DNA of 64,000 nucleotides from Salpingoeca rosetta (Eukaryota; Protista; Choanoflagellata): the NCBI GenBank assembly GCA_033442325.1, contig JAWQFM010000006.1, positions 604,673 through 668,672 on the forward strand. Reading direction: 5' to 3'. Within the stretch, counting starts at the first letter, position 1; every line of letters begins with the position of its first letter. A program made the position numbers and the translations under genes. Below the pieces are notes generated by a model, which was given only the letters and a program-made list of their open reading frames with translations, did not search any database and was not told where the DNA came from. Below are positions 50,473 through 52,305 of this stretch, piece after piece.

Positions 50473-52305
50473 AATGGGGCTGCGGCCGTGGTGGAGAGCG
50501 GTCAGATTACAAGAGATGGGTAATCATGGAACAGTGGCGGTGGTCATGATGGCATGAACGGCGGCTGGCGGCTGGCAGGATGGCGCGGACGGCAAAACCC
50601 AATGGACGCACCCACCAAGCCCTCCCTACCCCCAGCCTCAACTGCAGGGCCAAGCCCACCACTTCTCCGAAACAACAGAGAATATTGTGGCCGTGCAAAC
50701 ACACGTGTGCACGCACACACCAATCACGCACCTCCAACCCACAGCGGGAACACCACCACCACCACAACTGTCCCAATCCACAACAACACCCCGCGCCCTT
50801 TCAACCAACTGTCCAACTCAACCTAAATACCCACCACCACCCCAAACTTCCCAGCCCTTCCAACCCACACCATCCTCGAGCTGCAACCCTCACCTCTCTC
50901 GCCCTCACAACCACTGCACACCATCACCCACCCGATCCTCCAAACACCCACATCCCCTGCTCCCCATTCCCACTCCCGCCAGACACGAAGCACGACCAAA
51001 GCTTGAAACGCACAGCAACGATGCGTGACAGCGCACCAGCCAAACACATGCTCGCCCCCCACCCCACAACCCAAGGATGGGCAATAGCTGGGCGCCCATA
51101 ACACATGCGAGCATGACACCAACGCGAGCGCCGTGCACATGGGCGTGCACAAAACAACGAAGGACAAATGGAAACCGACAAAGGTGTTGGAAAGAGGGCA
51201 CAGACTGTGGAAATGTGACGCCCTGGCCTTTGCCAGTACCCCAGCACGGGCAAACACCAAACCACCACGACCGACACCACCAGCAGAGGGTAGCGATGGC
51301 GGGTGGGAGGTGTTTGTGTGCACTGAGATGCACGCTGGGGAAGGCCATGAACAGGGCGCTGGCACAGACAACAACAGCAGCGTGCCAATGTGTTTGACTG
51401 CCTTTACAACGCGCGAGTGGTCAGACAGGAATCGCCCGCAGAGAACGCAATCAAGTGACATGAAGAGATGGAGACTCGACTGCAACAAACGCAAACACAA
51501 CACCAGCAGTGCAACACACACATGTGTGTGCACGGCGGCTCAGAGCAGGTGATGCACATGCTCGCAAGAACGCAGCAACCACCACACACATCCCCTATAA
51601 ACGGAAGCAAAGGGCGAGCGTGTGCCCAACAGTGGTGGGTGGCGGTGCAAGGCCGTGCCAGCAACGTGCGGTGGAAGAAGGGAGGGGTCAGACGCAGAGG
51701 AAGCGACGAAGAAGCGAGGGAGAGACAGCAAAGGAAAGCAGGGAACGGGACCGAGACAGGCGGGGTGCAACGCAATGTATGCGAAGCACACCTCAATGGG
51801 GGTTGAAGACCACGGGATGTGGGGCTCTCACACCAACCAGCACAATGCAGCACCGGTGGGAGAGGCGAGAAGAAGCAGGGAAGCCGAGCGTGAATGGCAG
51901 AGAAGGGAGGCTGTTCGTGCCAGGCCGTGCAAGAAAGCACAGCAAAGCACGCAGCGAGGACAGATGAAAGAAAGAAAGGGGGGGACAAATGTGTTGGGAC
52001 GAGAACAGAAGTTGCATCATGAAGATGCTGATGGCGGTGATGCCCAACAGCGGACGTGAAGCGCTGATGTGCACATGCACACGTGGCGCGACTGAACGGG
52101 CGAGAAAACCAAAAGCCCTGACAGGAGAAGCGACAAGAGAGATAGAGAGAGCAACGGAAGGAAGGTGCACTGGCTGCCATCTATACGCACGCACACATAC
52201 ACTGCAGCTGATCGCCAGCCGCAACCACAGACCACCGCCAATGATGGTCATTCTCGCCTTGGTGTCATCACCCCGCAATCTCCACCACAGCCAGTGGCAG
52301 CCGCG

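Follow-up and report, generated by a model that had tools for sequence, protein, structure and literature searches.

The 64,000-nt stretch of Salpingoeca rosetta DNA considered here (positions 604,673 to 668,672 of contig JAWQFM010000006.1 in assembly GCA_033442325.1, forward strand; hereafter the window, whose own numbering is used throughout) harbors on its minus strand a many-exon WDR36/UTP21 gene, identified by Pfam matches to Utp21 and to the WDR36/Utp21 propeller as well as by the annotated 898-aa product, which maps there. One intron of this gene carries two hairpins, each of them followed by an ACA triplet, and the second, denoted hairpin 2 (51359-51211), is the subject of this analysis. 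Folding calculations point to an exceptionally stable structure, the strand that bears it is expressed, and one side of its internal loop is perfectly complementary to the U5 small nuclear RNA (snRNA) of the same organism. We tentatively interpret hairpin 2 as an H/ACA-type ribonucleoprotein (RNP) hairpin.

The host intron and its RNA

In 13 kb of the window the sequence is 100% identical to scaffold GL832956.1 of assembly GCA_000188695.1. Expression was followed by mapping three stranded recent (2026) RNA runs and one older (2011) run on 3,001 letters (49800-52800). The intron is defined by 5, 12 and 25 spliced reads and by one contig, and the reads falling inside it are oriented as the exon reads, so that the intron RNA represents the coding strand of the host gene, which is also the strand of hairpin 2. 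Its depth is close to that of the exons in two runs (0.4-6.3 versus about 3.5, and 0.4-19.5 versus 7-15) and about one-fifth of it in the third, overall 20-80% of exon depth, while the adjacent 236-nt intron and the bin 50002-50102 have a depth of 0. Given this sense depth, and no reads from the neighbouring introns, a long RNA comprising all or most of the intron thus accumulates. Hairpin 2 itself is covered in the three recent runs at depths of 1.7, 4.4 and 7.3 (51214-51314) and of 4.6, 9.4 and 5.3 (51315-51415), and the older run yields the intron contigs 51344-51502 and 51617-52105 at about 4x, with exons at 6-8x.

The recent runs show nine fixed differences to the reference within the intron (50574, 50597, 50678, 50685, 51516, 51653, 51903, 52020 and 52169) and seem to represent a strain or line of this organism that has diverged slightly; the older run equals the reference at the four positions that it covers (51653, 51903, 52020 and the exonic 49846). 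None of the nine differences falls within 50686-51515, the segment holding both hairpins, where about 4.7 would be expected over some 630 nt of usable depth (Poisson p about 0.01). This difference-free stretch is a weak hint of constraint, subject to linkage and coverage artefacts.

Fold and geometry of hairpin 2

Re-reading of the sequence and minimum free energy (MFE) folding place the stem, the helices, the ACA and the AAAGGC strand of hairpin 2 on the minus strand where the first-pass annotation had put them (Table 1). The hairpin (51359-51218) has an MFE of -77.7 kcal/mol compared to -54.2 +/- 4.1 kcal/mol in 200 dinucleotide shuffles (z -5.74). Equally stable folds are found in six of 8,417 sliding 149-nt segments taken from both strands of the 64 kb, and these six represent three other loci with a G+C content of 0.69-0.72 versus 0.62 in hairpin 2. 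Furthermore, the hairpin is retained unchanged within the MFE structure of the whole intron. Given its shuffle score, its rank among the sliding segments and its persistence in the larger fold, the models indicate that hairpin 2 is a real, exceptional and locally autonomous structure.

In the partition function, the pocket of hairpin 2 is a 6x6 internal loop formed by UUCAUG and AAAGGC and closed on top by the GCC/GGC helix; its two strands touch through 2 weak base pairs, and opening the pocket fully costs 1.0 kcal/mol. The spacing from the top of the pocket to the ACA amounts to 6 + 8 + 1 = 15 nt, in the middle of the 14-16 nt that characterize an ACA box located directly 3' of its stem. The one-hairpin H/ACA layout is thus present, with an 8-bp lower stem, an open pocket, an upper stem starting from GCC/GGC and an ACA after 1 nt, and the geometry is canonical for a single H/ACA hairpin, in agreement with what had been claimed for this module. 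A self-closed pocket (UGGCCUU/AAGGCCA), raised earlier as an alternative conformation, can be drawn; with an energy penalty of 3.0 kcal/mol, it reaches a pair probability of about 0.018 in the predicted ensemble, and it was rejected as the dominant state.

Table 1. Positions of the features discussed, in window numbering.
Feature	Position	Strand	Remarks
Host intron of WDR36/UTP21	50246-52432	minus	2,187 nt, GU..AG; spliced joint in 4 runs
C-box consensus GUGAUGA	52265-52271	minus	only one in the intron; clamped with CUGA by long terminal helix
CUGA, D box candidate	50505-50502	minus	other end of the intron
Hairpin 1, 66-nt hairpin-ACA	51389-51454	minus	candidate Psi46 pocket; probable sister copy; folds as hairpin; upstream of hairpin 2
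GUCUGUGCC, first copy of 9-nt direct repeat	51361-51369	minus	ends the spacer after hairpin 1
Hairpin 2, lower stem, 5' strand GCGCCCUG	51352-51359	minus	pairs with 51225-51218; unpaired probability <=0.02 for 7 of 8 bases
5' pocket strand UUCAUG	51346-51351	minus	mostly unpaired in the ensemble
GCC, 5' half of 3-bp pocket-closing helix	51343-51345	minus	partner GGC 51234-51232, p about 0.99
Upper helix, 5' strand CCCCAGC	51334-51340	minus	partner GCUGGGG
Branched distal part, about 88 nt	51246-51333	minus	MFE fold; side hairpin GUGCAU-CUCA-GUGCAC and long C/A-rich versus G/U-rich helix including CAAACACC/GGUGUUUG
Distal helix CAAACACC/GGUGUUUG	51316-51309 / 51258-51251	minus	MFE fold
Upper helix, 3' strand GCUGGGG	51239-51245	minus	partner CCCCAGC
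GGC, 3' half of pocket-closing helix	51232-51234	minus	partner GCC 51345-51343
3' pocket strand AAAGGC	51226-51231	minus	candidate guide for U5 G37-U42; first base 15 nt before ACA
Hairpin 2, lower stem, 3' strand CAGGGCGU	51218-51225	minus	partner of GCGCCCUG; stem of 8 bp
ACA box candidate, then UUU	51214-51216	minus	1 nt past the lower stem
GUCUGUGCC, second copy	51197-51205	minus	ends the spacer after hairpin 2

Complementarity to U5 and composite setting

The U5 genes of S. rosetta were located by a loop-I pattern search of the genome, which gave two copies of about 151 nt, each with a score of 33 bits under the Rfam U5 model, an Sm site and the loop CGCCUUUUACUAGAG; an Rfam U5 search of the genome gave no match among the 48 of 752 candidates scored. 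Counting positions from the start of the Rfam alignment, the 3' pocket strand AAAGGC forms a perfect Watson-Crick helix with GCCUUU of this U5 (-6.0 kcal/mol), directly followed by U43. The assignments made earlier for human U5, namely pseudouridine (Psi) 43 to ACA57 as well as Psi46 and the 2'-O-methylated C45 (Cm45) to U85, agree with the literature (PMC7960923), where Psi at this loop position is described as the most conserved U5 modification (PMC7960923). In yeast cells, position 43 of a U5 fragment is already modified by an endogenous activity (PMC5733568). A genome-wide pattern search for a canonical 6+6 guide to Psi43 elsewhere returned 0 matches versus 4+4 for the reversed control, other spacings and wobble pairs lying outside the pattern.

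Some 300 nt upstream of one of the U5 copies (L003:1466-1616), a sub-threshold Rfam match to SCARNA2 was noticed (L003:965-1171, minus strand; 34.8 bits versus a gathering score of 48; E 6.7e-06). It could be an independently transcribed C/D small Cajal body-specific RNA (scaRNA).

The chance level of a hexamer with an ACA at the proper distance was estimated from dinucleotide-shuffled introns. In 2.7% of them an ACA is preceded, at 14-16 nt, by some Watson-Crick hexamer that fits a loop-I uridine, and in 1.1% a loose lower stem is present in addition. The real intron contains two such hexamer-plus-ACA sites (ACAs at 51216 and 51391). In 128 kb of real sequence six other loose sites of this kind occur, with fold z values of -2.0 to +1.6 versus -5.5 for hairpin 2. 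In hairpin 1, AAAGGC sits 14 nt before the second ACA (51391-51393, minus strand), and on a shorter lower stem this hairpin could present U43 as well.

The two hairpins are enclosed by elements of the C/D type. Near one end of the intron lies its C-box consensus and near the other the CUGA; the terminal duplex that joins these regions (52312-52255 with 50512-50468) is predicted at -51.5 kcal/mol and includes a helix of about 23 bp, and upstream of CUGA lies a candidate guide whose duplex with U5 loop I (-9.5 kcal/mol) contains one internal mismatch. A comparable arrangement is known from U85, a compound C/D-H/ACA guide for Cm45 and Psi46 of U5 (PMC5733568; PMC7960923), and the features of that type, C/D boxes and a terminal helix around an H/ACA domain together with a D-box guide for U5 C45, are found here. 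Because of the C/D clamp and of hairpin 1 upstream, hairpin 2 takes the position of the 3' hairpin in the H/ACA domain of a U85-like composite. Hairpin 2 has canonical geometry and belongs to an expressed RNA whose other elements are directed at U5 loop I, and its interpretation as a Psi43 guide module is partly supported.

Starting from the structure with its spacing, the expression of the strand and the species' own U5 sequence, all of which are observed, the favoured explanation can be put as follows. A two-module domain, consisting of hairpin 1 with its ACA, a spacer, and hairpin 2 with its ACA, would lie in the midst of a long stable sense RNA derived from the WDR36/UTP21 intron, whose ends would be clamped by the C box, the D box and the terminal helix, such that the whole would resemble a greatly enlarged U85/SCARNA10-type guide for U5 loop I. 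The lower stem and the ACA of hairpin 2 would recruit Cbf5/dyskerin-Nop10-Gar1-Nhp2, and the 6x6 pocket would present U43 by means of the AAAGGC:GCCUUU helix for pseudouridylation. To the statement that hairpin 2 is an H/ACA-type RNP hairpin, forming the 3' part of an H/ACA-like domain within a giant intronic RNA similar to U85, we assign a probability of roughly 40%. That it truly guides Psi43 of U5 appears unlikely at present; within the H/ACA reading it would otherwise be a structural or assembly hairpin. The most elaborate version, a single intron RNA of about 1.8 kb whose three guides (box D and two H/ACA pockets) would install Cm45, Psi46 and Psi43 on U5 loop I, is more doubtful still.

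Evidence against the H/ACA reading, rival explanations and relatives

A number of observations weigh against the H/ACA reading, beginning with the pairing itself. Opposite the perfect 3' helix, the 5' pocket strand UUCAUG meets U5 C45-G50 (CUAGAG) with a G-C pair, two mismatches, a C-G, a U-A and a U-G pair, amounting to -0.3 kcal/mol as a duplex with the organism's own U5; the partial pairing announced for this strand is therefore borne out, and it is weak. Altogether hairpin 2 and U5 form seven contiguous pairs, or ten across a 2-nt mismatch. In yeast experiments the minimum was eight pairs, two mismatches abolished activity, and near the minimum the pairs flanking the unpaired dinucleotide mattered (PMC6049503); the seven contiguous pairs stay below that minimum, and the ten in all exceed it across a double mismatch. 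Furthermore, in a scan of the organism's own 18S, 28S, internal transcribed spacer (ITS)/5.8S, U1, U2, U4, U5 and U6 locus, U43 is tied second among 2,388 uridines of ribosomal RNA and snRNA, and 12 sites reach at least 10 of 12 pairs. Since 12 sites pair as well, complementarity alone does not single out U5. The equal-scoring sites lean on G-U pairs in GU-rich expansion segments, and no convincing better target for the pocket was found among the own 18S, 28S, ITS/5.8S, U1, U2, U4 and U6. The Psi43 pocket proposed in the first-pass annotation is supported by the 3' strand with six of six pairs to the own U5, by the geometry and by the expression of the strand, whereas the 5' strand pairs poorly and U43 is not a unique target.

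Further points of this kind concern the boxes and the shape of the RNA. The hinge between the hairpins (51397-51360) lacks an H box (ANANNA) and has two overlapping ACA in its place, and no Cajal body (CAB) box of the form UGAG, AGAG or NGAG is present within 51211-51359. As Drosophila scaRNAs can function without a CAB box (PMC3884663), its absence is not decisive. The upper part of hairpin 2 has about three times the usual H/ACA length and consists in part of inverted low-complexity sequence, and in folds of larger context the ACA is weakly paired with UGUG. A mature 3' end 3 nt past the ACA is not supported by the mapped runs, in which neither an RNA end at this position nor any pile of read starts or ends is seen and in which the depth runs on 3' of the ACA at an equal or higher level (2.6-8.6x in 51012-51213). 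If the hairpin 2 domain is embedded as in U85, an internal ACA is to be expected. A separate mature H/ACA-sized RNA is likewise not shown by these runs, whose libraries would hardly capture one.

Rfam gives 0 matches at gathering score on the window and, with E up to 10, nothing relevant on the intron and on a 301-nt domain around the hairpins (51180-51480). Only noise was returned, from microRNA models, from CrcZ at a CAA repeat and from snoU89 at another place in the intron. The snoU89 match, to the human Psi46 guide SCARNA12, extends over 52144-52275 on the minus strand just inside the C-box end (13.7 bits, E 0.42) and is probably due to chance. One rival explanation takes hairpin 2 for a small-RNA precursor, an intronic substrate of Dicer or RNase III. 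Its long imperfect helix would suit such a role, and precursor models of microRNAs are matched non-significantly (E 1.3 and 2.9); but these matches score 15 bits versus thresholds of 50-110, hairpin 2 is branched, and canonical microRNAs are not known from choanoflagellates. We hold this explanation for barely credible.

The relation between the two hairpins bears on both the origin and the meaning of the guide-like letters. An alignment of their 3' sides (AAAGG-CAG...CACAUU) outscores shuffled sequences (p 0.018), the 5' pocket of either one starts with GUUC, and GUCUGUGCC is, according to a sliding control, the only 9-mer common to flanks anywhere in the intron. On these sequence grounds hairpins 1 and 2 look like tandem duplicates, which is the simplest reading and also fits a pocket strand and a box that were kept while the stems changed. 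After such a duplication, hairpin 2 would have gained a new lower stem, a 3-nt register shift and the distal extension of about 88 nt. If the modules are duplicated, AAAGGC and ACA may have been inherited and do not count as independent evidence, a further point on the negative side of the H/ACA reading.

The 9-nt repeat GUCUGUGCC can also be read as the trace of an insertion, in which case hairpin 2 would be a mobile or duplicated element unrelated to U5 modification, a hairpin unit of about 155 nt with a 9-bp target-site-like duplication, as in miniature inverted-repeat elements or retroposed small RNAs. The repeat does flank hairpin 2 together with its ACA and is the sole shared flank of this kind in the intron. 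Against an insertion, the sequence occurs just once in the genome, at this locus, the inverted repeat stops short of the 3' end of the putative insert, and a poly(A) tail is absent. Since hairpin 1 also precedes a copy, the repeat is better explained as the shared end of tandem units, and an inserted element is very improbable. Of the hinge, GGCAC (51381-51385) can pair with GUGCC either at 51362-51366, giving a local hairpin, or at 51197-51201 past hairpin 2, in which case an outer helix wraps hairpin 2 and its ACA; in models, the 9-nt repeat could hence create an alternative-structure switch.

The explanation that competes most seriously with an H/ACA hairpin is a structural hairpin without H/ACA function, just one among the numerous strong helices of a heavily folded intron that is retained or slowly removed, or of a stable intronic RNA protected by its C/D ends alone. 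The ACA and AAAGGC would then have come together by chance or be leftovers of a duplicated hairpin 1 that decays as a guide, and the fold would partly be due to inverted tracts of the CCA/GGU type. This is quite plausible, if short of even odds. The 2,187-nt intron as a whole folds very strongly (MFE -926 kcal/mol), CA/GT and CCA/GGT repeats abound in it, and the distal arms of hairpin 2 are C/A-rich on one side and G/U-rich on the other. The misfit of the 5' guide strand, the joint absence of H box, CAB box and Rfam match, and the unbroken depth through and past the ACA speak for it as well, as does the resemblance of the 3' side to hairpin 1, by which guide-like letters need no selection here. 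It is at odds with the non-repetitive lower half, where the 8-bp stem, GCC/GGC and the 7-bp helix enclose an open 6x6 loop at a distance of precisely 15 nt from an ACA that follows the stem by 1 nt, a conjunction rare in shuffles and absent at the other candidate sites of the window, and with the lack of strain differences in the hairpin region (0 of 9).

In order to place the H/ACA reading among known systems, the intron RNA was compared with several classes of guide and snoRNA-related transcripts. Like U85/SCARNA10, it is intron-encoded, its C/D boxes and terminal helix enclose an H/ACA-type domain, U5 loop I is what its D-box guide and one hairpin pocket are directed at, and hairpin 2 stands in the place of the 3' hairpin. 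U85 has a length of about 330 nt, in keeping with the few hundred nucleotides of its type, whereas the S. rosetta RNA measures about 1.8 kb from box to box and about 1.8-2.2 kb in total, without the homology to animal U85 that an Rfam match would indicate. It further differs by an ACA after each hairpin, by the missing H and CAB boxes, and by a second hairpin that is branched and 149 nt long; an additional U43 pocket is not a described function of U85. With ACA57/SCARNA11, the human guide for Psi43 of U5, hairpin 2 shares the predicted target uridine. No sequence or covariance-model similarity is detectable between them, the complementarity of hairpin 2 is one-armed, and ACA57 is a stand-alone RNA of two hairpins whereas hairpin 2 is embedded in a larger RNA.

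The succession hairpin-ACA-hairpin-ACA without an ANANNA hinge is reminiscent of the single- and multi-hairpin H/ACA RNAs of archaea, and of those of trypanosomatids and Euglena (AGA/ACA), which carry a box after each hairpin. These RNAs are short, and S. rosetta is a holozoan. A likeness also exists to long noncoding RNAs with small nucleolar RNA (snoRNA) ends (sno-lncRNAs) and to further stable intronic RNAs capped by snoRNPs, as a long intron-derived RNA persists while neighbouring introns vanish and snoRNA-type boxes are found at its presumed ends; here, however, a single C/D motif would be built from both RNA ends instead of a complete snoRNA at each end.

For animals, yeasts and plants, guides for the modification of spliceosomal snRNAs are well documented; a literature search for such guide RNAs in choanoflagellates found nothing. 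If hairpin 2 is a working H/ACA module, composite C/D-H/ACA guides of the U85 type for U5 would predate animals, and the locus would offer a natural case of a guide that gains a new target through duplication and register shift. Such a module would also put the minimal pairing need of an H/ACA pocket to the test; in the three-guide version, 6-7 bp, essentially on one arm, would suffice for a pocket to act. Even if hairpin 2 is structural only, it still marks an unusually stable and highly folded intronic RNA.

Regarding the intron and its surroundings, the longest intronic open reading frame (258 aa) matches no Pfam family. A search of a representative protein library, with one WDR36 exon as query and the exons unjoined, retrieved neither a relative's intron nor a locus in another choanoflagellate genome; the best full-length relatives are the reference gene itself, a 711-nt metagenome contig, an animal chromosome and spliced transcriptome contigs. 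Spliced reads of all three recent RNA runs carry an insert of 40 letters where 49937 and 50200 are joined, and a loose end in the older run matches it; the window nowhere contains a 14-letter piece of this insert, which adjoins CA repeats. The assembly thus seems to miss a 40-nt exon segment at 49937-50200, and some 13 residues may be missing from the annotated 898-aa product. Finally, reads of opposite orientation join 50765 to 52696 via CA (15, 41 and 11 reads) and continue into unrelated sequence on both sides. The tract CACCACCACCAC of repeat family D14 occurs at 50748-50765 and at 52696-52713, and these reads originate most likely from another transcript that shares this tract, not from the intron described here.

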